From Bugula neritina (taxonomy: Eukaryota; Animalia; Bryozoa): a stretch of 64,000 bases of DNA. Below the pieces are notes generated by a model. The model had not been told where the DNA came from. It searched no databases and saw nothing but the letters and a program-made list of their open reading frames with translations. Positions 1,242 through 59,200 of this stretch are shown here, in pieces (positions within the stretch are counted from its first letter, which is position 1; every line of letters starts with the position of its first letter). The position numbers and the translations under genes were made by a program. The stretch is from positions 2,013,751-2,077,750 of the forward strand of contig OZ037773.1 in assembly GCA_964035545.1 (NCBI GenBank), read 5' to 3'.

Positions 1242-4200
1242 ATGCCATATGAGGAGATAGAACTGAGAGAGTCAAAATCTGACCTCATGACGTCACCACA
1301 CAATGAAAAAGATAGTAAGGGTTGTACCCTCTCACTTCCCATGGGCTTCCTCCTTCTCCTATTGGCTGTACTCCTGTCGGTGGGCGTCGGCCTGATTGTG
1401 TTCTTTGCTACAGGAAACAACCAAGTGAAATGTGCAGACTCAGATGTAAGTTACCTTACAATAAAATATCCCACAAAACAACAGATAGTGTCGTCTTAGT
1501 GTCTTCTTACAATAACATCTTACGCAAAATAACATACAATGTCTTCTCTATTCAAAATATGTTTCTACTTTGTAGGATGTTTCTGGTGGGACAGGAGCTC
1601 AGATTGGAGGGAATGGTGATGGAGTTTGGTGGCCAGACTCTATGTGTCTTGTGACTTGTGAGTATCTATAGTATTTGTAATATGTATTATTGCTAGTTAG
1701 TGTTACTAGTAACAGTGTTTATGAGTTATAACATATGTTGTTTCTAGTTAGCACTACTAGTAAGAGTATTTATCATATATTATATTGTTATTAGTTAGTG
1801 TTACTAGTGTCCATCTTTGCTGTTACAGGTATTAACAATGGCTACTGCAAGGGTGATGTGAGTCATCCACTAAATACTACTAAAGCTGCATCACCCACTC
1901 TACCAACCACCACATTACCTACTACTACAGAAATTACCACAACACCTGGGAAAGTGAGAATTTCTTTTACACAAACCTTCTCTATGTTATCAGCTGTGTT
2001 ATGAATATCATATCAAAATATCTGATTTTCCTCCAGGTGAGAGATGTGAGACTACCATTACATCTGATACCACTACACTATGACATAGATATGAAACCAG
2101 ATATCTACCAATCAGATCCAAAGATGTTTACCAACACTGGAAGAGTGAAAATAGATATGAGATGTGATGTTGAAACAAATGTTGTTACTATTCACATTAA
2201 ACAACTCAACATCACATCTTTTCAGCTTACCAAGCAAGGTTGGTATTCAGCAATGATTTTATTCCTAAAAATGATAATTTAAAAACTTGTTGCGCAGTTA
2301 TGAAACCTAAAAGTATTTTATTTTTAATCTTATAACAAAATATTTTAAAAAGTTCAACTGCTTGAATGTTGTAAAAATAATAATGAGTATTGTTTTTAGA
2401 TGGGACAAGTATAGATATAATTGGAGAGCCAATCTATGACAAGGCGAGAGAATTTGTAAAATTTCCAACTCAAACCAAACTTACCGTGGGAAACACTTAT
2501 ACACTAGACGTTGGATATGAAGGCCCATTACAGAATGATTTAGCTGGATTATATTATAGTAGTTATGATAAGGTTGACAGTACTACAAATACTGTTACTA
2601 AAAGGTACATACTATACATGATACATACACATATAGTGTTTTCAATGCATTAACTAATTTTCGGCTTGTCTGTCTGTTTGTCTAATTATATAGCACATCA
2701 TAACTTCGCTGATCATAATAAAGCTAAATACTGTTCAAGCATTGAGTCCCCTCTAATTGTAGATATCTTGCTACTACTCAATACCAAGTTACAGACGCAA
2801 GAAAGGCGTTTCCGTGTTTTGATGAGCCTGCACTAAAGGCTACATTTACTATTTCTTTGTTGAGGAAGGCTGGTTATACGGCCCTTTCTAATACAGGTGT
2901 TGAAAAGACTGAATTACTGTAAGTTAGCCTTTAAATGTTCACTAACTCTTTATTTACTTGATCCTGCATATAGGTGTCTAGCAATAATTATAATAGCTCC
3001 CACCAATGCTAGGAAGTGTTGAGGAAGGTTGAGCCAGCACTAAGTCTGTTGAGTGTATAACGTGTGATCTATATCTTAGATCCAATTTCAATTTGATATT
3101 GTTATAGTTTTCAGATTTAGGGTTGATGTGCCACCAAGAGAGTCTATTTAACACTAGAGAAACTTCACCAGTTAAGTCGAGTAGATATCGTTATATTTAA
3201 TACAAGAATACATAATAAAAATCCAGTGTACAACAGTAATGATACGCACGTCTATTTAGTTTACAGCACTATCCTCAACTGAGCTAGTAGCGCGAAGCGG
3301 CTACTATTACTTATAAAACAGCCTAGATAATTGGCTAATACATTGTTCCGGGTCAATACGCAACCTTGCGTATTGTGTTGCTGGTAGCTCCACGAGCCAC
3401 CACACTGCCCCCTCCAGCAGAAAGCCCACTTTCTGATAAAATAAAATTCACATAAAAAACGTATACTTCGTTGTGGGGGGGGGTAAGAGAACAGTATAAA
3501 AGTATATACAAAAAAAACAACAACTGATAAAAAATATACAGGTATATATAACGTGCACACTAAGTAATAAGCAAGAGAAGGTCCTATCTACATGTAGAGT
3601 ACGTGCCACCATTACGGTAGGGAATGCCACAGAGAGGTAGGGAAATGAGTAGTATGGAGTTGTAGGTAGATTCGAGTTAACTGCGGGCCGCACGCTTCAT
3701 GCGTTTAATAGACTCCTGTAAGTATTTGAGTTCACTGGATGCAGCCTGTACTCGTGGGGCCAGCCTGTACACTTCTTGCTCCAAGTCGTGCGCCCTAGCT
3801 TCTACTTCACGTAGGTTGCGGGCCCAGGGGGACGAGCGAGAGGAAGTCGGCTGTCTGTGTCTTTTCCGCTCTGAAGATGGAAGGGGAGGAGGGAGTGTAT
3901 ATGCATTTGTGTCTACCTTCTGTAGTACGACACGAGGAAAGGTATGCGGCATGCGTAGAGGACTGCGAGGTGGAGAGTTAGCAGACTGGGTAGGTTTATC
4001 TGCGGCTCCAGAGATGATGGGCCGCGGGGAAGGGAAGCCTTGCTCCAGGCGAGATAGCCGAGCTGAGTCAGTGATGAGTGGTTTGATGGCGTTGAGAAAG
4101 GCAGGATAGGATGATTCGTCTACTTCATAGACATGCCCTTGATAACACTGCATAGTACGTTGGTGCCGCAACAGGTAATCACGATTGTAGCTATATTCTC

Positions 4201-20000: not shown

Positions 20001-23000
20001 ATGCCATATGACGACATAGAATTGAGAGAGTCAAAGCCTGACCTCATGACGTCACCACACAATGGAAAAGATAAAAAGGGTTGTACCCTTTCACTTCCCA
20101 TGGCCTTCCTCCTCTTCCTATTGGTTGTACTCCTGTCGGTGGGCGTCATCCTGATTGTGTTCTTTGCCACAGGAAACAACCAGGTGAAATGTGCAGACTC
20201 AGATGTAAGTTACCTTACAATAAAATATCCCACAAAACAACAGATAGTGTCTTCTTATTGCCTTCTTACAATAACATCTTACGAAAAATAACATACATTG
20301 TCTTCTCTATTCAAAATATGTTTCTATTTTGTAGGATATTTCTGGTGGGACAGCAGCTCAGATTGGAGGGAATGATGATGGAGTTTGGTGGCCTGACTCT
20401 ACGTGTCTTGTGACTTGTGAGTATCTATAGTATTTGTAATATGTATTATTGTCAATTGGTATTACTAGTAACAATGCTTATGAGTTATAACATATGTTGC
20501 TTTTAGTTAGCACTACTAGTAAGAGTATTTATCATATATTATATTGTTATTATTTAGTGTTACTAGTGTCCATCTCTACTGTTACAGGTATTGACAATGG
20601 CTACTGCAAGGGTGACGCGAGTCATCCACTAAATACTACTAACGCTGCATCACCGTCTCTACCAAACACCACATTACCTACTACTACAGAAATTACCACA
20701 ACACCTGGGAAAGTGAGAAGTTCTCCTACACAAACTTTCTCTATGTTATCAGCTGTGTTATGAATATTATATCAAAATGTCTGATTTTTCTCTAGGTGAG
20801 GGATGTAAGACTACCATTACATCTGATACCACTACACTATGACATAGAGATGAGACCAGATATCTACCAATCAGATCCAAAGATGTTTACCAACACTGGA
20901 AGAGTGAAAATAGATATGAGATGTGATGTTGAAACAGATGTTGTCACTATTCACATAAACAAACTCAATATCACAACTTTTCAACTCACCAAGCAAGGTT
21001 GGTATTCAGCATTGTTTTCATACGCTTTTTTATTTTATTTAAAAACTGATAATTTAAAAAGTTTGTTGCACAGTTGAAAAACCTAAAGATATCAAAATAT
21101 TTTAAGAAGATCAACTGGAAAAATAATAATGAGTATTGTTTTTAGATGGGACAATTATAGATATAATTGGAGAGCCAATTTATGACAAGGAGAGGGAATT
21201 TGTAAAGTTTCCAACTCAAACCAAACTTACCGTGGGAAACACTTATACTCTAGACGTTGGATACGAAGGTCCTTTACAGAATGATTTAGCTGGATTATAT
21301 TATAGTAGTTATGATGAAGTTGACAGTACTACAAACAACATTACTAAAAGGTACATGCTATACATTATATTATATACACAACATATTCTGTCTAGTGCAT
21401 TTACTAATTTTCTGTCTGTCTGTCTCTCTCTCTGATAATACAGCGTATCATAACTCACCTGATCATGTTAGAACTGAATATTGTTCAAGCATTGAATCCC
21501 TTTTACATTTAGATATCTTGCCACTACTCAATACCAACCAACAGATGCGAGGAAAGCGTTTCCATGTTTTGATGAGCCTGCACTTAAGGCTACATTTACT
21601 ATTTCTTTGTTGAGGAAGTCTGGTTATACAGCCCTTTCTAATACAGATGTCGCAAAGACTGAACCACAGTAAGTTAGCCTTTGAATGTTCACTAACTCTT
21701 TATTTACCTGGTCATACAGGTATCTAGCAGTGAGTATGATGGCTTCCACCGATGCTAGGAAAGCAATTCCGTGCTTTGATGAACCTCAGCTCAAAGCGAC
21801 TTTTACTGTGAGCTTAGTGAGACAGTCTCACATGACCAGTCTATCAGATAGGCCACTGAATTACTCCTAGCTGCTGTATGAATTGACACTCACAATATGT
21901 TATGACACTCACACTGTGCTGTACACTCATCACTACTAAATCATACTTCTAATGGTAGTATGTGTAGTTCCTGTAATTCTAGAGTACCATCAGCTGTTAG
22001 GGCTAGCAGTTATATGAGTGAATAGGTTCCAATAGCAATTTTTAGTCAATAGTTACCAGTTACTCCTTATCACTTACCAGTCAATGCCTTCTGGTTAGTA
22101 ACTAATAGTTAGCAATCTCTAGTCAATAGTTATCACTTTCCAGCTACTAATTAAGTAGTTACTAGTTCAGATTTAGCAGTTACAAATCAGTAGGTGAACG
22201 TTACCAGGATCAGTCCCAAGTTTACCGTTCCTAACTACTAGTTTGCAGTCACCAGTTACTAGGTGTCAGTTCCACAATAGTTACCAGTTAGCTGTTTGTG
22301 GTGACTAGTAGTGACTAGCTTTTTAGTAAACAGTATTGCAACTTTTAGTGCTAGACACAATATGACCCCAGCATGTAATATGTAGAAGTCATGAAAGAAT
22401 ACTCTAATCAATATAATCAAGTCTTTATTGTTTTAGAGCTGATGGATGGATTAAGGATATATTTGAGCCAACAGTAAAGATGTCTACTTATCTGTTAGCT
22501 ATGATTGTCTGCGACTTTGCTCAAAAGAATGGTACTACTTCTGGAGGTGTACGTTTATTCAAGTTATTAAGATTAGAGTTCATAGAAATATAAATGTATA
22601 ACATGTCGTATTTCAAAGATAATATTTAATATAAATTGTGCTTTTATAATTTTCAGGTAACTTTCAGAGTGTGGGCCCGGAAATCCGCTATAAATCAGGT
22701 AGATTATGCCCTAGACCAAGGAATCAGAATATTAGGATATTTTGAAGAATTTTTTAATGAAACCTATCCACTGAAAAAACAGGGTGAGACCTTTACGTGG
22801 AAATTGTTTTACCAATCCCCTTTGTGAGTTCCCATTTTATAGATATAGTTTTTACTCGGCAATTACATCAGTATATATCCTACTCCCTAGATATACATAA
22901 TTTCAATTTTATAAATATATTATTATAAAGAAAAAACATGGTTTCTATATTCATTGTAATAGATTTTGAGATAACTTTTAGAAATCGCCTCCTCTTGTAT

Positions 23001-37256: not shown

Positions 37257-39785
37257 ATTGAAGTAATGCTGTTCTTTGTAACATACCTCTACATGTTATG
37301 CATTTTATACATCTATAGGCAAACATATTTTTATGCTTTCCCTTATACAGAACCTACATTACAGTAGATACAATAGATGAAGGAGTTAGCAAAATGTTTA
37401 CTTTACTGTAAATAATCTTATGATAGAGTGAAATCATTACCCAACTGTATAGAAACCATTGAGGCAATGAACATGAGTTGATGAGAAAATGTTGTAAACA
37501 AAAACATATGAGATATCACCCAGGGGTTCTTGATAATTCTTATCACGTAATATTTGTAATAACTTTCCCACAATCCTTTGCAGAGAATCGCCTGTCACCC
37601 ATCAGCATATCAGCATAACATGTTTGAGAATATGCTGATATTCTATCTCTTTTTCAAGAGCTCATTTCAGTAATCTGGTTTGTGAGCCCACTTCAGTGTA
37701 GATTGTCAGGCAGGATTGATTATTCAGTATTTATATCAATATTTACAGAGAGCGGGTTTTAAGGCACTACTCTGCATTACTCCCCTATCTTGCTACCCTG
37801 CATTGCTACTTTATGTCATAACATTTAACTGACAGGTAAACTGTAGTAAACATATTTGAGAGGAATTCACCTTTAGAGGTGGTGTATTAGTAAATATTTA
37901 CAAATATTGTACATTGTGAAACAGCAGTTCCCACTGGCCAGTGACTACTGCCTTATAGTGTCTACTGTCATGTCACCTCCGGTAACTCCTGCAGACACCT
38001 GACTTTGCATGTCAATGCCAACAGAAGTCTCATGCAATGTCTATTCATGTTATTGAGTGAACGAGAACAATGGCAAATAATATGGTTGTTAAATGTTTAT
38101 ATATTCAAATATGTTGCCACTGAAGCCAAATTACTATTCTTATTTTGCTAGATTGTGGCTGAATTGACAAGTTACACACAATTGACATGGAAGAATATTG
38201 AAATATAGGCATTCTGAGAACTGCATTAGTAGACTGGAATGTGGCTACTTTCTACTATATTATAAACCAATATAATAGCAGAAACTAGCTGACTATATTA
38301 TAATGTACAGTGTTTTAGACAGTTTATGCTTTTCATCATTTAGTATAAGTTAGATTATTTTCATTATTATGATTATCTCCCTTTCTTTGATACAAAGTCT
38401 TTACTGCAGTCTAAAATAAATACATCGCACATGGCACATGGCGTCCAACAAGAAGGAAGTGTGTTAATAATTACCTTGTAATGTTATAATTACAAGTGCT
38501 ACACGTAATCAGTAAAGGAATGCTGTTACAGTAAAGGAATGCTGACCTTACTTTTGCACACATTACATAATTAGACTCTCTAAAGCTATATGCCAGTTGA
38601 TTTCAATTTCTGTTAGATTGTAGCTTTTGCAACAAAGCTGTAAGAAGTAAGCTTTAAAGTTATATTATGTAATTACATATTGTAGCATGGAACTGTATAT
38701 ATAAGCTCTAACAATGTATTATATATAATTAATATCTCTATTATAAGAGTATAACCTCTAAGATTATGTTATGTAAGTATATATAATAGAAAAGTACAAG
38801 CTCTAATACCAAATCATGTATACAAATAACATCCGTGTTATGAAACTATATAAGTTCTAAATATATATTATATATACGCAAGTATTATATAATATAGTAT
38901 AATATGGTATATAGTATAATATTATATGTAGTATAATATTATATATAGTATAATATTATACTATATATAATATGATATTCTCAAATAATAAGTTATACAA
39001 ACAGTAATATGTTTATTATGAAAGTCTAATACTACATTATAAAGTTATATATAATATAAAGCTATAAGCTTTAATACTATGTCACATATAAATACAGGCA
39101 TTATGTAGATTATGAAAGTAAAAGCTCTAGAATTTTATTATGTAGTTATATATGATATAAAATTATACGTTATAATACTATATTATGTAACTATGTAGCT
39201 ATGCATATATAATCATGGAACTATAAGATGTGAGTACAAGCTAGTTAGATACAATAACATTTTTGGTTGTGCTGAATAACATGATCTAGTAAAGAGTTAC
39301 AATACATGCGCCTTGAAAGCTGGTAGATAGCTATGTTATATATTCACAGATACTATCTAACATATTTATTATTTTATACTACTTTACAGCTACAATACAA
39401 TATATTTATTAATATAGTACGATATAATTGATACTATATTATATATCTTTACTAAAGATATCATATTATATGTTTACTATTTATAAAAACCAACAGATAC
39501 TATGTTATATATATTTCTTATATTATAACATATGATATAGCATAGTGCATCATATTACATATACTAGATTATATATACTAACTATATTATATTGTATTAC
39601 ACAGATATTTTTTTGTATAAATTTAGTATATCACATAGTATAATATGATATACTATATTATAGATACTACAATGTAAATGCCTAATATACTATAATATAT
39701 ATTGCATATAGTACAGTATATATATTTATATATCACAATATATTACATATAATACATTGCATAAATCTAATATAATATATTGAAG

Positions 39786-42700: not shown

Positions 42701-45700
42701 CTTTAGCTACATGGAGAATAACGACACCGGCCAAAGTTACCCCGAAAATAGGGTAACTTTGGCCACCTACTTTTTTTAATACCACAGGAGATCTAGCAGT
42801 CCCAAACTGCAAATGGTTCTTTCATTTAGTGCATATGTTGATAAGCTTCATTTAGCATCCAAAAATTTTAAAGAATATTGTAATCCTTTCATATGACACC
42901 CAAAATAAGTCTCAAAACGGCCAATGTTACCCCATTTTACGGTAATTCAAAAAGTTTGTTGCACAATTAAAAAACCTAACGACATCAAAATATTTTAAGA
43001 AGATCAACTGGAAAAATAATAATTAGTGTTGTTTTAGATGGGACAATTATAAATATAATTGGAGAGCCAATCTATGACAAGGAGAGGGAATTTGTAAAAT
43101 TTCCAACTCAAACCAAACTTACCGTAGGAAACACTTATACACTAGACGTTGGATATGAAGGCCCATTACAGAATGATTTAGCTGGATTATATTATAGTAG
43201 TTATGATGAAGTTGACAGTACTACAAACACCGTTACTAAAAGGTACATACTATACATTATATTATATACACAACATTTTCTGTCTAGTGTATTTACTAAT
43301 TTTCTGTCTGTCTGTCTCTCTCTCTGATAATACAGCGTATCATAACTCACCTGATCATGCTAAAACTAAATATTGTTCAAGCATTGAGTCCCTTTTACAT
43401 TTAGATATCTTGCCACTACTCAATACCAACCAACAGATGCGAGGAAAGCTTTCCCATGTTTTGATGAGCCTGCACTTAAGGCTACATTTACTATTTCTTT
43501 GTTGAGGAAGGCTGGTTATACGGCCCTTTCCAATACAGATGTAGCAAAGACTGAATCACAGTAAGTTAGCCTTTGAATGTTTACTAACTCTTTATTTACC
43601 TGGTCATACAGGTATCTAGCAGTAAGTATGATGGCTCCCACCGATGCTAGGAAAGCAATTCCGTGCTTTGATGAACCTCAGCTCAAAGCGACTTTTACTG
43701 TGAGCTTAGTGAGACAGTCTCACATGACCAGCCTATCAAATATGCCACTGAATTACTCCCAGCCGCTGTATGTATTGACACTCACAATATGTTATGACGC
43801 TCACACTGCGCTGTACATTCATCACTAGTAACTCATACTTCTAATGGTAGTATGTGTAGTTCCTGTAATTCTAGAGTACCATCAGTTGTTATATAGTTAT
43901 AGCTAGCAGTTAGATGAGGGAATAGGTCCCAATAGCAATCTCTAATTACTAGTTACCAGTTACTACTTAGCACTTACCAGTCAATGCCTTCTGGTTAGTA
44001 ACTAATAGTTAGCAATCTCTAGTCAATAGTTATCAGTACTATCTACTAATTAAGTAGTTACCAGTTCAGATTTAGTAGCTCTACAAATTAGTACCTAATT
44101 AAACGTTACCACGATCTGTCTCAAGTTTACTGTTCATAGCTACTAATTTGCAGTCACCACTTACAAGGTGCCAGTTCCACAATAGTTACAAGTTAGCTGC
44201 TTGTGGTAGCTAGTAGTGATTAGCTTTTTAGTAAGCAGTTGGTATTGCAAATTTTGGTGCTGGGTACAATATGGCCCCAACATGTAATATGTAGAAGTCG
44301 TAAAACAATACTCTAGTCAATATAATAGAGTCATTATTGTTTTAGAACTGATGGATGGATTAAGGATACATTTGAGCCAACAGTAAAGATGTCCACTTAT
44401 CTGTTAGCTATGATTGTCTGTGATTTTGCTCAAAAGAATGGTACTACTTCTGGAGGTGTACGTTTATTCAAATTACTAAGATTAGAGTTCATAGAAATAT
44501 AAATGTATAAGACGTTGTACTTTAAAACTAATAATATACAATTTGTTTTAATGAATTTCAGGTAACTTTCAGAGTGTGGGCCAGGAAATCCGCTGTAAAT
44601 CAGGTAGATTATGCCCTGGACCAAGGAATCAGAATATTGGAATATTTTGAAGAATTCTTCAATGAAACCTATCCACTGAAAAAACAGGGTGAGACCTTTA
44701 TGTGGAAACTATTTTACCAATCCCCTTCGCGAGTTCTGATTTTATAGATATAGTTTCTACTTTGCAATTACATCAGTATACTATCCTACTCCTTAGATAT
44801 GCATAATTTCTACTTTATAGCTATATTGTTATACAAAATAAATATGGTTTCTATATTCATTGGAATATAATGCAATAGATTTTAGGGTAACTTTTACAAA
44901 TTGCCTTTTCTTGTATTACATTTTCAACTGCCCATTTTGTTTTTGTTTTGTAAACCAATCTTCGGCCGAAGTTGGAGGGTACCAAAATTTGGGCGTCCGA
45001 TTCGGCGCACCCGAAATTTGAGGCGTCCAATCTTTGGCCGACCCACGTGGAAGATTCTAAAAGTCAAGAGCGTCCAAATTTCGACGCTCCCTAAGTTCAG
45101 CACGCTCGATTTCTAGAGTATATAAGGATGCGAGTTTGCCAGTGTATTTCAGTCTACCACTGGAACTCGCCAAGGGCAGACCTAGGAGAAAGACTTTGAT
45201 ATTACATTCTTTACACCAATAAATATTTCTACCTCTGACAAACCCCCTCTTCTCTTTTCTCTCACTCACAAGGAGTTATGTTCTCTAATTAGTTATTCCA
45301 CTACACAGAGCTATCACAATACCATAATAAAATAACTTCTTTCTTACAGTTAACACATCATTATATTGTAGATATGATTGCTATTCCTGACTTTGCTGCT
45401 GGAGCCATGGAGAACTGGGGTTTAATAACATACAGAGAAACTGCTGTACTCTATGATGACCAGGTTTCTGCTGCCTCCAACAAACAGAGAGTAGCTGTAG
45501 TTGTCTCCCATGAGCTTGCTCATCAGGTATCATCTATTTTATAATACAGGGTTTTACTATGTTTAGTGGGCACAACTCCAATGCAGGCTACTTCACTTTT
45601 TAATGGTATTTGATGAAACCAAGGCTGCATCAGAAAAAGTGCTTTTGCACCTAATTCATACTAATCAGCAAAGTGATAGTGACCCAGTTAGTTAACATGG

Positions 45701-48700
45701 TGCCACCCATAGCAATGCTGAAACCTTTAGCTACCTGTCACTACTATATTTTTTCTGCTTTTACTGCTTCAATTTATAGCATGCAGTTCTGTTGATGCAA
45801 CTAGATCCACTTAAATTTCTTTACTGACATGATTTCAGTGGTTCGGCAACCTGGTGACTCCGTCATGGTGGGATGACTTGTGGCTGAACGAAGGGTTTGC
45901 TAGCTATGTGGAGTACATTGGAGTAAACTTCACGGAACCTAACTGGCAGATGGTATGATTGTAGAAAAGTATATCTGCTTTGTGAAGTATACAGCAACAT
46001 TGTTGATGTTAAGTTAAGGAACTAGACAATGAATATATTTGAATGACTGAACTGAATGCTGTGTATACATCAGTCACTAAACTGAGTATTGTGTGCAGTT
46101 TACACTGTAATTAATGTACTAAATATTATGTATACTATCTTTAGCTCGACCAGTTTGTCACGACAGACGTGCAGAGTACACTCAAGTCTGATAGTTTGGC
46201 CACATCACACCCGATCTACGTTCCAGTCCAACATCCAGATGAGATTAATGAAATATTTGATAGCATTTCCTATGGCAAGGTACTTTTAACTACATTCCAA
46301 ATATTCACATTTAGGTGCAGCACTGGAGAAATTGAAAGATTTAAGATCTTTAAGTTTAAGTTTAAGATCTTTAAATTTCTTTATAGAATTTGGTTTGGGG
46401 CACTGGTTGGAATTTTTGCGAGAACATAACATGTTTTGCTACATTTCTATCTAGAGCATAGGTTTTTTTTAATTTCTCTATCACTACACCTGCCTCGTAA
46501 TTCAGGGTCCTTCTTTTACCCTTTCCTGTTGCCATAAAATCTGTATGTGTTTACATTTACAGGGTGGTTCTTTGATTCGGATGATGCGGTATTTCCTTGG
46601 AGATTCAATCTTCCAGAACGCCTTAGCTGTACGTATTCTGAAACAATGACTTATTTTCAGAGTCAGGAGAAATCATTTAGAGACTATGGACTGCTAATAT
46701 TAGCTTTTTTATTATCCAATATGTAACTCCAGTGCTCTTTTGCAGCATATATTCACGTTATAAATGTAACAAGTTTTGCGTAACATAATGTCAACATTGA
46801 AGATGGTTTGCAATATATTCTCACAAGGAATTGCTACAAATGTATTAATTTTACTGACAGAACTACATTAATGAGAAGGCATATGATGATGCACACCACG
46901 ATGATCTCTGGGAAGCCATGCAAACAGAGGCAGACAAACAAGGTCTGACAGACAGAGATGGTCAAAAAATAAATATCAAGGCGATTCTAGACACCTGGAT
47001 TTTGCAAATGGGTTACCCTCTACTCGACGTCACTGTAAGCTGTTGGTACACTCACTACTATTGGTTGTATATACAACTATATAGTGTTACAACGGCTTTA
47101 ACTGGTTTCATAATATTCACAGATGGAACCTGTTGTGGGAAGCAAGCAGCCAATAAGAATCACACAGAAGCACTTCTTACTTGATGATTCACAAGAGCCA
47201 GACCCCAGATACCCCAGTCCTTACCAGTGAGTTTCTATTACTAAATCATTGTCTTCATTTGACTCGCACCTACCTGTAGAATTTCAGCATCATTTACTGA
47301 TCAAACCAGAAAGTGGATTTAGGTACTATTACCATGTTCTATAATTTTACAGATACACATGGGATGTTCCATTCAGTTTTGTTACGAGTAAATCACCAGA
47401 CTTTGATGTTGATGAAACTTCTGTTGACTGGTTCTACAGGACTGAAGATTCTAGTGAGTTAGCTCTGTTCAGGTGGAGCTTTTTGAATGACTTTCTATTT
47501 ATTACTTCTTGATATTGTGACAGAAGTAAGAACCAACCTAAGCTATGCCATCATAAAAATATTTCTCTTATGTATTACTCAATATGTTTGTCTAATACTA
47601 ATTATATGGTGATTGCGCTGTAGAGAGCATAGAAATAGATACTGATTCTGATTGGCTGATCATAAACCCAAAACAATATGGTTTCTACAGAGTAAATTAT
47701 CCAGAATCTTTGTGGCAGAAACTAATTGAGCAACAAAATACAGATCATACTGTAAGTATAAATAGCGCACAGTTTGTCAGACTTATATGGTGTAGTTGTT
47801 ACAGTGTAATGCTATAGTGTAACTGGATATTATATTGTAATACCACAGAATGTCTAGTTGTTTTCTTTTTTACAGGTTATTGATCCATTGAATAGAGCCC
47901 AGATTATAGATGATGCCTTCAACATTGCACTGTAAGCAAATAACACATAGTTTTGTTTACAAATACTCACGCAAGTTTATAGTTGCTATCCCTGTGAGAA
48001 ACCCATGATGGAAGGGTATTTTGTTAGAACGGGCTAAGGACTTGTTTAGATGAGGCACAGGAGCAATTATGACTGGATGCTCTTCCTAACATTACCAATG
48101 GCCTTTGTTTCGCGTTTACTGCTCAGTTTTGTTTACAAATATCTTTCCTATTATGTACTCTGTGAATTCACTCATTCAAACTGTTGAGAGATGATACACT
48201 TGGTTATTGGTGTTTCAGGGCTGGTAAACTGAATATTAAGTTTGCAATGGAGTTGACTAAATATCTCTCTAAAGAAGAAGACTACTTTCCATGGGATGCA
48301 GCCATTACAAGTCTGAGTTACGTTTCTTCAGCTCTGAAGAGAACTGAAGCTTACGGAAACTTTAAGGTGCTTCATAAGGATCCATTGAGATAATACAATA
48401 TATTATCAGCTCCTTATGTTAATATTACATGCTAAGTCTCCACAGTTATCTATATGTGCATTATGTTATCCCTATGATACGATGTCACAATGTAACTATA
48501 CGTATACATTCATATGTTAAATCACAATGTCGCATATGTAACATTATATCACTGTGTTACTGTATTGCAACACTATTATTATATTTTTAAAACTGCTATA
48601 TAATATTTTATAAATTTAAATTGCTGCATTAGGATATTGCTATATGATTCTATTGCTATAACGTTTTGCTAATACAGCATTATTAAATGACTAGTATATA

Positions 48701-53247: not shown

Positions 53248-56200
53248 GGGGGAGATTTAGCCAAAGCTGACAGCGTTTCTCTTAGTGGCAGCGACTTTAC
53301 GCTATACTCTGACGAAGCTTGGTCTGATGAACTATCCGACAGCGTCATAAAAGAAACAGTGAAGTATGACAGCATGTTACAAGGTATGCATATTTTTGAT
53401 ATGGTATACAGTTATACAGTATATACTATATGTAGTTATACAGTATACTTACTATATACGGTTATACAATATACTGTATGTAGTTATACAGTATACTTAC
53501 TATATACGGTTATACAACATACTGTATGTAGTTATACAGTATACTTACTATATACGGTTATACAACATATTGTATGTAGTTATGCAATATACTTACTATA
53601 TACGGTTATACAGTATACTATAATATACAGTTATACAAAATACTAGAAGAAATTAAATGCATTATATCTGTATTATATCTGTAGATTATTGGTATATCAA
53701 GCTTGAGTAAAAATTTCACTGTATATAAATATAACAAAACTCACACAAGTTTATAGTCACCATCCTTGTGTGAACACTCCTGATGGAAGGAGTTTTTGTT
53801 AAATCGGGCTAAGGACTTATTCAGATTGGGCATATAGGAGCAATTATGACTGGAGGCTTTTTCTAGCATCACCAATGGCATTTGCCGGGGTTCAAACCTA
53901 TGACCTCTTGTTTACTGCTCTTTTATATAAATATAACATGCTGATCGCTTAATTTCATAGCAGTTGTCACAAAACTGTTGGTAGCAATGTGACGAGTTCG
54001 AAAAGTCTGGTAGTCAGAAGTGTATAGACAAGTAGTATACAGCTTGCTAATCCAGTTGAGAGTAAATAGAGTAGACTTTATTTCTTCAGTAAGATATGCA
54101 CAGATGAACTTATAAGAATGAACTGTGAGAATGAACTTATAAAAAGGAACTGATTCGTAAACACAACTGCCTCAGTATTTATAGTAAACAAAACACTCTA
54201 GAACATTCTCAAGCATTCCAGTATAGAAGATTCTAGTACAAAACATTCCCCACATACCAATACTATTTATAAAAAATCAAAACAAAACATTGGAATTTCC
54301 ATGGTTATTTCGCAATTATTGCGCAATACCTTGTTTACATTGCTGGACAGTAGTTAACATGACTAATGAAAATAACAATGAACAATGACCCATCTCTTTG
54401 ATCAATCTAGAATATTTATGAACATTCGTGTATAATCATTAGGAAAAACCCGGTAAGTCTATAGGTATATGTATACTCAGAATTTGTGACAACCCCCCAT
54501 TCTAAGAGAAATTATCTTAATAATTTCTCCTTACTACTTAAAATTCTGAGTCAATTCGGCTTAGATAATCGGCTCCAACATTGTCCTTTCCTTTGATTGA
54601 CTCCACCTTGATTCTGAAGTTCTGTAAATACATAGCCCATCTCATCACTCTGCTGTTCTCAAATTTGGCCTGGTTGATGTACACCAGCGGTTGGTGATCA
54701 GTCTGCAGCACAAACTCGGCACCATATAAATATTGTAGATATTTCTTGACCGCCCATACCACAGCTAAGCATTCCTTCTCTATGGCGGAGTAGTTTCTCT
54801 CCCGGTCTAGTAATTTCCTACTTGCGTAACTCACAGGGAACAGCTTTCCATCCTGAGGCTGCATCAGCACTGCCCCTAGCCCAACATCTGATGCATCCGT
54901 CCTTAACACAAACGGTTTGTGTACATCTGGCAATTTTAAAATTGGTGCACTTGTCAGCATTGTTTTTAAGGTGGTGTACGCCTTCTCTTGTGGTTCCTGC
55001 CATTTGACTTTCTTTGGTTCTCCCTTCTTTGTTAAATCTGTTAGTGGACTCGCTATAGTTGAATAATGAGGGATATATTCTCTGTAGTAACTAGTAAGTC
55101 CAATGAACGATCTCACTTGCGTCTTATTGGTTGGCCTTGGCGCAGCCCTAATTTTCTCAATGTTGTCATCCATTGGTTTAATTTCACCCCTGTAAAGTTT
55201 ATGTCCGATGAACTCCATGTTTGTTCCTCCTACTCTACATTTACTTGGTCTAACGGTAAGTCCAGCTGTGGCAAGTCGGCTGAAAACTTCTGTTAGCATT
55301 TTAACGTGTTCTTCCCAACTTTCCGTGTGCACTAGAATGTCATCAATGTAGTTGTCCACTCCATTCAGATTTTCAAAAAGTTTTCTCAACCCTCTCACCA
55401 GTGTCGCTCCAGAGTTAACCATCCCAAATGGCATCTTGATGAATTCATAATGTCCATCGGGTGTCACAAATGCAGTTTTAGGAATATCTTCTTTCTTCAC
55501 TGGTATTTGCCAGTATCCCTTGGATAAATCAAGTTTGGTAAAGTATTTATCTTTACTGAGCTTTCTGAAAACGTCATCTGTTTTCACCATTGGTTCAGGA
55601 TCGAATACTGAGACTCGGTTTAGTTTGCGATAGTCTATACAAATCCTGTTGCTTCCATCTGGCTTCTTTACTATCACCGTTGGTGAGGCGTAGGGAGAGG
55701 TAGATGGCCGAATAACACCCATCTTCAACATGTCCTCGATGTCCGCCTTGAGAGTTTCTCTTACCCTGTAGGGCAATCCATATGGTTTGAATTTCACTGG
55801 CTCATCAGTCGTGAGCTCGATAGAATGTTCTATTCCCGTTGCATTTCCTGGCAAGTCACTGAAGATACCTTCAAACTTTCTTAGTAACTCCTCCAGCTGT
55901 CTTCTTTGCTGATTCCCCAGCTCTTCACCCAGAATGACATCTTTGCTTGTTTCTGTCTGCCGTTTCTTACTGTACAGGTCCAACAAATCATCTTGGTCTT
56001 CTTCTCTTTCCTCATCGTGATCAATAATTCCAGTACCAGCAGCATCTAAAGTCATCACAGCTCCAACAGTCATAGGGTCGGTGGGCATCTCCCGCTCAAA
56101 ATATTTCTTCAGCATGTTGGCATGGTATGTTCTCCTCTTGCCTCTAATGTTGATAATGTAGTCATTCAGTCTGACTTTCTCCTCAATATTGAATGGTCCT

Positions 56201-59200
56201 TGCCAATGCATCAGCAATTTATTTCCATCCGTAGGTAGAAGAATGAGCACTTTGTCACCAGATTTGAAGTCTCTCTGCTTAGTTTTCTTGTCAAAATAGT
56301 GTTTGTATCTTTTTTGACTGTCTTTTAGCGAAGCTAGTGCCATTTCCATCATGTCATCTAAACGCTCTCTCAATTCAAAAACATGCTGATAGCAGGTCTT
56401 GACTTCATCGGCAGTGTCTTCTTTTGTCCAAAGTTGTCGCAAGATGTACATTGGTCCACGCACAGTTCTTCCATAGAGTAACTCAAATGGGGCGAAGCCT
56501 GTTGATTCCTGTGGGACTTCTCTATATGCAAATAGAGCCGCATTGATAAACCGATGCCACTGTCTTGGCTCTTTAGCACACAACTTTTTTAACATACTCT
56601 TGAGGGTTCCGTTGAACTTTTCCACAAGTCCATTGGCCATTGCATGGTATGGTGAGGTAGGAAGTTGTCGCATGTCAAGTAATCTGGTAAACTCTTTCAT
56701 GTAGTCCGAGATGAATTGAGTTCCTTGATCGCTTATCACCTCCTCTGGTATCCCAACACGACTGTATATGTCAAGCAGCGCTTCAGCTACAGTAGCTGAG
56801 TCAATGTTCTTCAATGGTGTAGCTTCAGGGTATCTTGTAGCATAGTCAACTAAAGTTAGGATGTAGCGGTGTCCTTTCTCACTTGGAGGGTTAATTGGTC
56901 CGACTAGGTCTATCGCACATCTCTTGAATGGGGTGTCAATTAGTGGTGTTTCCTGTACTGGAACTTTCATGACTGAGCCTTTTTTCACCGTCTTCTGGCA
57001 AATGTCACATGATTGACAGAAACGTACGACATCTCCGTTTAGTCCTGGCCAGAAGAAGTTGGAAAGCACTCTATCAGTGGTTTTCTTTACTCCTAGGTGT
57101 CCGCTCATTATGCAGTCATGAGCTTTCTGTAGAACTTCCTTCCTCAGTGAACTGGGTACCATGAGCTGTTTAACAGGTTTTACACTGGCAGACTTCGAGT
57201 CGGTGTACTCACGGTACAGAATCTTATTTCTCACCACAAACCTAGTGATGCCTCCCTTTTTCTCCTTCACTTCTTTTGCATCGAAGAAACGCTCCAATGT
57301 GGGGTCATCCCTCTGCATTCTGGCTATCTCATCTTTCCCTATACTTAATGGGTTAGCATTTGAATCAATCATCAGTGGTTTGTCTCCTGACTTTTCCTTG
57401 ACAGCTTGAGCTCTTGTGGTTACGGCGCAGTCCTTCCAGTTTTCCAGCGGCTGGTCAGCTGATCTCGCTCCATCCACATTCCCAATAAGCAGGTCACATA
57501 TCGTCTTGTCCATTACTGCATCTTTGACGACACCATTGTAAAACGGTGAGCGCACTGAGATAAGTGCCCACTGAGCATCCCTAACACTTGCATCAGCCAT
57601 CTTCAAATAAACTGATTCTCCAGTTAAATGTTGAGGTTGCACGTACTTTGCATTGACTACAATGCAACCACAGCCGGTGTCGCGCATTACAGTAGCTCGT
57701 TGGCCATTGACTTCCGCATCAAATATTGCTGTGCCCCCATCTTTGAATTTGGGGCCATTCTTGCAGACAGCAGCGTTGACAAACTTTTTACCATTAACTA
57801 TGATTTCTGTAGGTTCTTCCACTTTAGATGAGATTCCTGGATCTATGACCACAGTCTTATTGTGAGTAGTCGCTATTGCAGCAGCAGCATGCACTGACCT
57901 TCCACCATACTTTCTGCAGTCTGAAGTATTGTGGTTGTTCATCTTGCAATGTGAACAGTACTTCTTCCCTCGCCGTGGGCAATTACGAGCAATGTGTGAC
58001 TTATCTTTGCAGATGAAACATGCCCCATCGCTTTTACTTCCTTGTTCAGCATTCATGCTACCGGTGGGTGTGTTTTCCATCCTTTTTATATTAGTTTTCT
58101 TAGTCTTTGCTAGTTTTCTTCCACGGGCGTGCAAAAACAGTGACGCTGCATCACACATATCCTCACTGCTGTTGTAGGAACTTTGCTTTAAATGCACAGC
58201 TAGGTCGTCTGGGCATGATGATATAAATTGTTCAGTCGCCACTAGTTTGGCTATGTCCATGCCCCCTGAAAGCTCCACCCACTTGTGCACATAACTTTCT
58301 ATCCTAGTGAATAGTTGGGCAGGAGTTTCATCCTCGTAAGCTTCTGCCTCTCTGAGCTTTTTTCTGTAGCCCTCTTGAGTCAAGTTAAAGCGCTCCAATA
58401 AGGCTTCTTTGACTTTTTTATAATCTCTACGATCGGTAGGTGACAACCGGATGTAAGCTTCTGTTGCTGTACCCCTTAGGTACTGACTGAGATGGTAGGG
58501 CCAATCTCCCTTGTCCCAATTACATCCTTCGGCAACCCACTCGAACCGCTCTAAATAGCTATCCATTTCATCCACCTTCTCATCAAAGAATGGTATTTTT
58601 GGTTTTGGTTTGTTAGCTATTTCTAACCTGGTGCTCTCATGTCTTGAGTGCTCCAAACTTGTGTCAGCTTTCAGCTTTTCCATATCTAATTCATGTCGTT
58701 GTCTTCTCTCTTCTGCCTCCTGGTCAGCTTTAATCTTGAGTGCCATTGCCTCCTGATCAGCTTTTATCTTCATCTCCATTAAGGCTTTCTCATTTTCTTG
58801 CCTGATCCTTTCCGCCTCACGCTCTAATCTCCGCTCCTCTCGGTCCTTTTCTTTTTCCTCTCGGTCCTTTTCTTTTTCCTCCTGTGCAGCAACAATGGGT
58901 AGGTTCTTTTCAACAAAAGCTATGAGCTTGTCCTCCACCAACCCAAGGTCTTTACCCATCTGTGTCACTCTCTCCAACAACGCCATAATGTCTCAACAAC
59001 TGTTAATTAATCCTGTGTATACTCACGTTGTAACTAATAACTTCCCTGTGTGCGACTGAGACTTCCCGGAGCAGCCCCCAATTGTCACAAAACTGTTGGT
59101 AGCAATGTGACGAGTTCGAAAAGTCTGGTAGTCAGAAGTGTATAGACAAGTAGTATACAGCTTGCTAATCCAGTTGAGAGTAAATAGAGTAGACTTTATT

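Follow-up and report, generated by a model that had tools for sequence, protein, structure and literature searches.

Pairs of mutually exclusive exons can switch a property of the enzyme they encode, as do exons 9 and 10 of pyruvate kinase M. Exons 4a and 4b of OGDH act in the same manner (PMC7969005). In C. elegans, let-2 exons 9/10, egl-15 exons 5A/5B, bet-2, gly-5 and gly-6 have exons that are multiples of three in length (3n), and an intervening intron that is too short stops the inclusion of both (PMC4165533). For alpha-tropomyosin exons 2/3, the branch point lies too near the upstream donor (Smith and Nadal-Ginard 1989, as cited in PMC4165533), and a donor to branch point distance of <50 nt has served as a criterion for human mutually exclusive exons (PMC5740500). 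Mutually exclusive exons that rewrite the substrate pocket of an enzyme are rare, and no example of such an exon switch in an M1 peptidase was found in the searchable literature.

Here, we describe a candidate pair of this kind, exons 6a and 6b of an aminopeptidase N (APN)-like gene (gene C), in a 64,000-nucleotide stretch of the genome of the bryozoan Bugula neritina (the window). The locus is similar to the C. elegans clusters in having homologous tandem 3n exons and, probably, an intervening intron below the intron minimum, with no need for a frame shift and nonsense-mediated decay. However, exclusion in C. elegans was shown by RT-PCR for spacers of 14-30 nt against a 40-nt minimum, whereas we infer it here from a 51-nt spacer in a genome whose shortest other intron, in a small sample, measured 80 nt. 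As in alpha-tropomyosin, the downstream branch point appears too near the upstream donor for U1 and U2 to bind one intron, although the alpha-tropomyosin intron is long with a branch point unusually far from its acceptor, and the intron described here is short with a normal distance of 24 nt. The swapping of a functional enzyme segment by a duplicated exon pair is also known from OGDH 4a/4b and pyruvate kinase M 9/10, but those pairs alter regulation (Ca2+ sensitivity, allostery) and 6a/6b would alter residues of the substrate-binding pocket. The same two positions vary with P1 preference or N-terminus recognition among M1 paralogs (ERAP1, ERAP2, APA, human APN with Gln211/Gln213, and TRH-DE-like proteins with Ser or Ala); these variants are separate genes, whereas here both would come from one gene by splicing.

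The features of gene C on which the analysis relies are as follows.

43038..43242, plus strand: exon 5, upstream constitutive exon, by spliced refinement against Mytilus ANPEP (P0128); donor GTACAT; PF17900 positions 64-114; its last 2 nt open a split Arg codon
43243..43404, plus strand: intron 5, 162 nt; divergence from copy B only 4.3% (other introns, 10-18%)
43405..43560, plus strand: exon 6a, canonical type, 156 nt, phase 2-2; acceptor tttag|, donor |gtaagt
43561..43611, plus strand: spacer intron between 6a and 6b, 51 nt; its retention would lead to an immediate TAA stop
43582..43588, plus strand: predicted TACTAAC branch-point consensus, with the A at 43587
43612..43767, plus strand: exon 6b, variant type, open, 156 nt, phase 2-2; acceptor acag|, donor |gtatgt
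43768..44345, plus strand: intron from 6b to exon 7, 578 nt (785 nt if counted from the 6a donor)
44346..44457, plus strand: exon 7, common downstream exon, by refinement; C-type letters in RNA-like contigs of X1, X19 and X20
44562..44688, plus strand: exon 8, by refinement; joint in X1
45372..45526, plus strand: exon 9, GAMEN and HELAH; Pfam PF01433 positions 28-116
45839..45952, plus strand: exon 10, WLNEGFA with the third zinc ligand Glu

The M1 signatures GxMEN (as GAMEN) and HExxH (as HELAH), the distal Glu (in WLNEGFA) and the PF17900 N-terminal beta domain (exons 5, 6a and 6b) were all found in gene C, which by its motifs is a catalytically complete APN-like M1 peptidase. Its closest full-length protein match was Mytilus edulis ANPEP.

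When checked against the sequence and its translations, the exon coordinates, lengths, phases and 56% protein identity (29/52) proposed in the sequence-only reading were exact to the base, and the reading frames of both exons are open. Exon 5 ends in ...AAAAG, so that the split codon is AGA or AGG and encodes Arg with either 6a or 6b, and the first base of exon 7 (A, 44346) completes CAA (Gln) if 6a precedes it and CTA (Leu) if 6b does; these split codons place both introns flanking the pair in phase 2. As in a mutually exclusive cluster, the exons are adjacent and homologous, share length and phase, and carry their own splice sites. Enforcement through U2/U12 incompatibility (a U12 donor of the AT-AC or GTATCC kind) or through non-3n exons, with a frame shift and nonsense-mediated decay, finds no counterpart here, the donors being GTACAT, GTAAGT and GTATGT, the acceptors AG, and the 156-nt length 3n.

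Each exon alone matched Pfam PF17900 at the same positions, 117-165 of 186 (E = 5e-19 for 6a and 2e-16 for 6b). At these E values the resemblance to the M1 domain is far beyond chance, and the identical positions imply that 6a and 6b are alternatives for one structural segment, as had been suggested from the sequence alone. Both encode the same N-terminal-domain strand segment, which contains a residue lining the S1 pocket and another that belongs to the trio holding the free alpha-amino group of the substrate. In the alignment with solved structures, Gln6 and Gln8 of 6a are matched to Asp and Glu in the 'ATDHE' of glutamyl aminopeptidase, and Met6 and Ala8 of 6b to both Gln residues in the 'TTQMQ' of porcine APN. 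The central triplet of the [Q/D/E]-x-[Q/E] segment is Q-Y-Q in 6a; M-M-A in 6b departs from the motif. The residue equivalences cited in the earlier reading (ERAP1 Gln181/Glu183, ERAP2 Asp198/Glu200, APA Asp221/Glu223 and human APN Gln213) hold.

That reading had characterised 6b by Met at the S1 site and Ala at the amine-binding site. The Ala is conserved, but the Met is peculiar to copies B and C in this window, and the S1 site is still Gln in all five other 6b lineages (5/5). What marks 6b across lineages is this Ala at the position where Gln/Glu otherwise binds the amine, together with a change of Phe to Leu/Ile in AFPCFDEP; the type-specific residues across lineages are ATTQ[Y/F]Q and KAF for 6a, and AV[T/S]QMA and K[A/V][L/I] for 6b. 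TRH-DE carries Ser at the amine-binding site. Variants TQFSP/SQFAP occur at the motif among database proteins, and Ala or Ser is present at the amine-binding site in full-length M1 proteins of other animals, P0058 (Branchiostoma, named TRH-DE-like) and P0017. The residue for which 6b has Ala belongs to a set of three that bind the amine of the substrate in ERAP1 (PMC11284793) and human APN (PMC7226027).

Metagenome contigs from no fewer than three further sources have the 6a-spacer-6b layout, and AG and GT are retained at each of the four splice sites in L011, L012/L013, L029/30/31/35, L032 and L033/34. In the nucleotide tree, all 6a and all 6b sequences formed two clean clades (support 100/100). 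The codon model gave an omega of 0.03 for 6b and 0.016 for 6a, with omega = 1 rejected (2dlnL 170-192), and pairwise dN/dS for 6b was 0.03-0.2 where dS could be estimated. Neutral evolution of 6b in relatives, named earlier as an outcome that would speak against the pair, thus did not arise. Purifying selection on both exons across lineages, together with type-specific residues, is again what characterises a mutually exclusive cluster. From the shared layout, the two clades, the purifying selection and the short spacer it follows, as far as sequence comparison can tell, that 6a/6b is an old, selected pair of alternative exons. A 6b-like exon with the motif TTFMAP (L014/L015/L027/L028) is fused to exon 7 and lacks a 6a in the roughly 540-1100 nt that precede it; it groups with B. 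neritina 6b (support 92/84) in a 51-residue protein tree which is poorly resolved, and the grouping is therefore not taken as proof of a 6b-only gene.

The refined introns of the B. neritina genome (32 from M1 genes and 2 from myosin) range from 80 to 1872 nt, and the 51-nt spacer is shorter than every one of them. The spacers of all other lineages are 40-61 nt long, and the introns to either side on those contigs measure about 195-900 nt. The distance of the predicted branch A at 43587 is 26 nt to the first base of the donor of 6a, and 24 nt to the acceptor of 6b. TACTAAC was absent from the last 60 nt of the other M1-gene introns (0/32), and copy B has CACTAAC in its place. The perfect TACTAAC pointed out in the sequence-only reading is present here at the distance given, but it is not kept in other lineages; the steric block built upon it fits the always-short spacer (40-61 nt) against the roughly 34 introns of at least 80 nt. 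On this contrast, in which the minimal spliceable intron is an estimate from about 34 introns and the branch point is a prediction, it is most likely the shortness of the spacer that keeps the two exons mutually exclusive.

Two sister copies of the gene, A and B, are present in the window.

2763..2918, plus strand: copy A exon 6a, intact
2974..3018, plus strand: copy A 6b remnant, decayed and truncated; homology ends there
21513..21668, plus strand: copy B exon 6a, intact
21720..21875, plus strand: copy B exon 6b, with a TAG stop at 21868-21870 and SNMP changed to SDRP

The earlier reading considered gene C by itself; copies A (truncation) and B (stop codon) have lost 6b. The next exon of copy A is at about 11.28 kb, past a G+C-rich insertion. 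Copy B is not a pseudogene throughout, a possibility ruled out by its exons 5, 6a, 8 and 10, which have dN/dS of 0.06-0.12 and no stops. From these sequences, copy C alone appears to have kept a usable 6b in the B. neritina genome, A and B presumably being 6a-only genes now. Having been discarded by two of the three copies, 6b is dispensable at least for A and B. Between the 6b exons of B and C, all five polarised non-synonymous changes (one a stop) fall on the B lineage and zero on C, a contrast of five changes only (p about 0.03, one-sided). With so few changes and a low neutral divergence (4.3% in intron 5), the intact 6b of C is weak evidence of current selection.

Contigs of a few RNA-like runs were placed at a likeness of at least 97% to exclude copy B (95.5% alike), a threshold that seemingly excluded short allelic contigs too. 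Gene C is expressed, as spliced RNA-like contigs carry C-diagnostic letters with synonymous variants only. An origin of these contigs from copy A or B was ruled out, for they have C letters at the diagnostic sites, and the three other letters are synonymous and found in neither A nor B. A GT..AG joint from 44457 to 44562 connects exons 7 and 8, and an X1 contig whose end is loose at 45526 continues into exon 10 (WFGNLVT). The sole piece within the 6a+6b stretch is a 6a piece, an X19 contig at 43451-43492 with a C-specific letter at 43453; no 6b piece was seen in the RNA-like contigs at this likeness (assembled contigs cannot show absence), nor any junction to 6a or to 6b in those placed (no 5-6b, no 6b-7). 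The share of sampled words from the 6a+6b stretch in RNA-like runs was 0.32-0.43, about one exon's worth, and X1 and X20 have no piece in 6a or 6b despite word shares of 0.41 and 0.38. X18 is a DNA run with evenly covered introns. The word-index protein search with 6b alone returned one candidate and no hit, and a three-species 6b profile recovered genomic-DNA ORFs only, with no spliced 5-6b or 6b-7 fragment.

Taken together, the sequence data make it probable that a 156-nt exon of an APN-like M1 gene, duplicated in tandem, has been kept as an alternative pair with one member per mRNA, 6b lacking the amine-binding side chain. The duplication is ancient. The spacer would be too short to be spliced out and the branch site of 6b would be confined to this interval, some 26 nt away from the donor of 6a; for these reasons 6a should be unable to join 6b. 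Exon 5 would be spliced either to 6a, whose donor then skips 6b to reach exon 7, or directly to 6b. Isoform a would be a standard aminopeptidase with Gln-x-Gln. Isoform b would have Ala for the amine-binding side chain, as in every lineage, plus the S1 Gln to Met change found here, and its recognition of the N-terminus should weaken or change.

The alternatives differ in what they make of 6b. It is possible, if on balance doubtful, that copy C holds a relic of 6b, silenced not long ago, while the alternative exon functioned in the ancestor and continues to do so in relatives; all three copies would be turning 6a-only, with C yet to acquire a disabling change. The decay of 6b in A, the stop and the broken SNMP in B, the 6a piece unaccompanied by a 6b piece and the one-exon word share in the RNA-like runs all agree with this, as do the long branch of B. 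neritina 6b and its loss of the Gln that is invariant in all other 6b exons; a local B-C divergence of only about 4.5% leaves little time for damage to show. Yet the non-synonymous changes that separate the two copies are all on B, both splice sites with the GTATGT donor and the perfect TACTAAC are intact in C, and only about seven residue changes, mostly conservative, fall on the long branch leading to the B/C ancestor. Contigs also drop rare isoforms, and few runs were used.

Were 6b in use, its isoform might be catalytically weak or inactive and serve as a binding or regulatory partner, for example a dominant negative in a dimer. The loss of one of three amine-holding residues (PMC11284793, PMC7226027) would be in keeping with this, and there is a precedent in a spliced truncated TRH-DE isoform that is inactive, dimerises with the full-length enzyme and inhibits it (PMC7225337). 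We consider it unlikely, as strong purifying selection extends over all of 6b, PCFDEP and SNMP among the rest, and the ordinary full-length M1 genes P0058 and P0017 also have Ala or Ser at the site. Far less credible still is that the 51-nt spacer is spliced out like any small intron, so that the protein would contain the segment twice. The 3n exons would preserve the frame, a consensus donor, TACTAAC and AG are all present in the spacer, and introns of 40-60 nt are spliced in some eukaryotes; against this, 6a and 6b occupy the same 49 domain-profile positions, the motif was found twice at a spacing of 52 residues in none of 150 representative M1 proteins, no other refined intron is <80 nt, and the type-specific conservation is typical of alternatives and not of a repeat. 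One-per-mRNA use of an alternative pair is the reading we prefer. That it yields two enzymes, one canonical and one without the domain-I amine anchor (compare TRH-degrading ectoenzyme-like proteins) which acts on blocked or unusual N-termini, the functions being sorted among paralogs since the tandem gene duplication, is a tentative and rather improbable extension, and the activity of the variant on blocked N-termini is speculation.

If confirmed, the pair would represent a conserved 'mutagenesis' experiment of nature on the residue that binds the amine, open to direct assay, and a simple system beyond nematodes and vertebrates for the enforcement of exon choice by intron length. It would also offer a snapshot of the loss or partition of isoforms after tandem gene duplication, with both exons in one copy, a stop codon in another and a truncation in the third. 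Further upstream, an ORF at 39780, which starts with MKMPYDD... and contains a 19-residue hydrophobic stretch that might serve as the N-terminal signal-anchor of an APN-like type II membrane protein, is a candidate 5' exon of gene C.

Gene C, one of three tandem copies (A, B and C) of an APN-like gene in the window, occupies about 39.8-50.4 kb on the + strand and encodes an aminopeptidase N-like M1 metallopeptidase, with the catalytic motifs GAMEN and HELAH in exon 9 and WLNEGFA in exon 10. Its closest full-length relative among database representatives is Mytilus edulis ANPEP, and the exon borders of gene C were refined against this protein as follows:

43038-43242, + strand, exon 5
43405-43560, + strand, exon 6a
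43612-43767, + strand, exon 6b
44346-44457, + strand, exon 7
44562-44688, + strand, exon 8
45372-45526, + strand, exon 9 (GAMEN, HELAH)

A sequence-only reading had proposed 6a and 6b as a homologous, mutually exclusive pair, and its description of the exons (coordinates, 156 nt each, phase 2-2, 56% protein identity, 51-nt spacer, TACTAAC) was confirmed in all details by sequence and translation. Both exons are open, each carries an AG acceptor and a GT donor, and they share 29 of 52 residues. Phase-2 introns flank both, and therefore Arg is restored at the 5' junction by either exon; the 3' junction codon is Gln after 6a and Leu after 6b. Each exon alone matches the Pfam M1 N-terminal domain at positions 117-165, and in solved M1 structures the two align to a single segment. 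Within the spacer (43561-43611), the A of TACTAAC (43582-43588), the predicted branch point, stands 26 nt past the 6a donor, with 24 nt separating it from the acceptor of 6b.

A search of 6b against 1.84 billion representative proteins returned two short ORFs spanning a 6b exon, translated directly from the genomic DNA of other animals. The contigs of these ORFs, and contigs picked up when metagenomes were scanned once with a 6b profile, supplied the loci of relatives, and the 6a-spacer-6b layout was found in five further lineages, which derive from three or more other sources:

L011, a contig from an ocean metagenome
L012/L013, one lineage
L029/30/31/35, L032 and L033/34, three lineages from one assembly series

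In all five, 6a and 6b are open and the four splice dinucleotides stand at homologous positions; the spacers measure 40, 50, 50, 55 and 61 nt, and the flanking introns on these contigs roughly 195-900 nt. A nucleotide tree fully separates 6a exons from 6b exons (support 100/100), hence the duplication is older than these lineages. Between lineages, synonymous sites have reached saturation, whereas the 6a and 6b proteins are conserved. Neutral evolution of 6b in relatives, which had been suggested as a check, was not seen: pairwise dN/dS for 6b was 0.03-0.2 where estimable, and codon-model omega was 0.03 for 6b and 0.016 for 6a, with omega = 1 rejected (2dlnL 170-192). By these estimates the 6b protein changes faster than 6a yet is clearly under selection. 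Judged from the comparison across lineages, 6a and 6b are a real, ancient and selectively maintained alternative-exon pair in an M1 aminopeptidase. In an M1 gene of another animal (L014, L015, L027 and L028), the sole exon-6 equivalent is 6b-like (TTFMAP...[13 protein letters not shown][N/D]YS) and is fused with exon 7 in an intron-less form, with no 6a upstream within the contig; this locus may be a 6b-only gene.

The residues A-T-T-Q-[Y/F]-Q and K-A-F-PCFDEP of 6a, and A-V-[T/S]-Q-M-A and K-[A/V]-[L/I]-PCFDEP of 6b, are kept across lineages. What marks 6b in every lineage is an Ala where ERAP1 has Glu183, hAPN Gln213 and APA Glu223; the residue replaced, with two catalytic-domain glutamates, holds the free amino group of the substrate or inhibitor (PMC11284793; PMC7226027). 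6b, as aligned, swaps the domain-I amine anchor for Ala. The neighbouring position (ERAP1 Gln181, ERAP2 Asp198, APA Asp221) contributes to specificity (PMC9234130; PMC11284793). Here Met occurs only in copies B and C and every other 6b lineage has Gln, while the 6b stub of copy A has Ile, one transition from Met. The S1 swap was therefore added in this lineage alone and does not account for conservation of the pair, so that of the two substitutions originally claimed for 6b, Ala holds throughout and Met is particular to B and C. Database proteins with Ser or Ala at the amine-binding site are ordinary genes, one of them named TRH-DE-like, and isoform b acting on blocked N-termini, as TRH-degrading enzyme does, would be consistent with this. 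Both the mechanism and the phenomenon belong to a known kind, and the literature searched contained no report of a comparable exon switch in M1 peptidases.

As both exon lengths are multiples of three, double inclusion would not be policed by frame shift and NMD. U2/U12 incompatibility was ruled out, the donors being of the ordinary U2 type. Retention of the spacer leads to an immediate TAA. Among known mechanisms a too-short, unspliceable spacer remains the candidate, and through it the pair is most likely mutually exclusive. In the same genome, the refined introns of six M1 genes (32) and of myosin (two, which appeared shortest in a genome-wide exon table) measure 80-1872 nt, and the spacer is well under all 34 of this small sample. 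The proposed steric block agrees with spacers of 40-61 nt in all lineages and other refined introns of at least 80 nt in this genome; the exclusion itself we infer, and the branch point is predicted. TACTAAC was present in the last 60 nt of none of the 32 other M1-gene introns (CTRAY in 8), and branch-point consensus is weak across introns of this genome; the perfect motif ahead of 6b is thus exceptional here, but it is specific to this lineage and not conserved in relatives. In C. elegans, five clusters of 3n exons have intervening introns under the species minimum (PMC4165533); gene C resembles them in its 3n exons and very short spacer, with the minimum for this genome judged from 34 introns. 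The donor-to-branch-point distance used as a criterion for human mutually exclusive exons (PMC5740500) fits gene C, with a predicted branch point.

The sister copies differ from gene C in the state of 6b:

2763-2918, copy A 6a, intact
2974-3018, copy A 6b, reduced to a decayed, abruptly ending stub (about 45 nt)
21513-21668, copy B 6a, intact
21720-21875, copy B 6b, with TAG at 21868-21870, SDRP in place of SNMP, and GTATGA in place of the donor GTATGT

A whole-genome search found no further 6b-type exons in the assembly. Copy A resumes with its next exon at about 11.28 kb, about 8 kb past the stub; the intervening stretch (3.0-11.2 kb), G+C-rich between positions 4 and 10 kb, has the look of a retroelement insertion by which the remainder of 6b was removed. 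Copy B apart from 6b looks like a healthy, functional gene (exons 5, 6a, 8 and 10 stop-free, dN/dS 0.06-0.12 against C); its 6b would be a poison exon if still spliced in. From exon 5 through 6b (43038-43767 against 21146-21875), B and C diverge by about 4.5% (2-5%, intron 5 and spacer included), versus 10-18% in neighbouring introns, which could reflect a gene-conversion tract or constraint on introns around alternative exons.

Expression was assessed from assembled contigs of sequencing runs aligned at 97% likeness; contigs lose rare isoforms, and the threshold seems to drop short allelic contigs too. Run X18 is DNA, with exons and introns evenly covered. Two studies contribute three RNA-like runs, whose cover of gene C exons past 6b is confined to exons 7-9; one contig has the GT..AG joint 44457 to 44562 and another continues from exon 9 into exon 10. 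These contigs carry C letters at the sites distinguishing the three copies, and at three further sites in exon 7 they have synonymous variants found in neither A nor B. Gene C is therefore expressed.

On balance, 6b of gene C is probably a still-working alternative exon in this genome. A relic silenced recently, as in both sister copies, is a less likely explanation; the truncated 6b of A and the stop in B favour it, as does the lack of any 6b piece among RNA-like contigs at 97% likeness or above, a source that loses rare isoforms. The sole RNA-like piece in the 6a/6b stretch (43451-43492, run X19) lies within 6a and has a C-specific letter at 43453, and the RNA-like runs contain 0.32-0.43 of sampled words from the stretch, about one exon's worth. 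Against a relic, all five non-synonymous differences between the 6b exons of B and C were assigned to the B lineage with other lineages' 6b as outgroups, and the terminal branch of copy C 6b has zero length; these five changes suggest that 6b of C is still constrained. Double inclusion and an inactive regulatory isoform jointly take up the small remainder.

A Gypsy/Ty3-type polyprotein ORF lies just downstream of gene C (54538-58986, - strand; 1482 uninterrupted codons) and encodes a gag zinc knuckle, protease, reverse transcriptase and integrase. Four small contigs of the genome assembly (C101, C126, C127 and C194) carry myosin and M1 genes with many in-frame TAA/TAG and without animal-size introns, features that identify them as apparent ciliate DNA inside the assembly. 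A myosin heavy-chain gene (G000:C1:10717499-10717967 and 10719201-10719548) contains two tandem exon pairs; within each pair both exons map to one stretch of the profile (90-121 and 174-216), the spacers are about 117 and 289 nt, and we take the pairs to be classical invertebrate myosin alternative-exon clusters.
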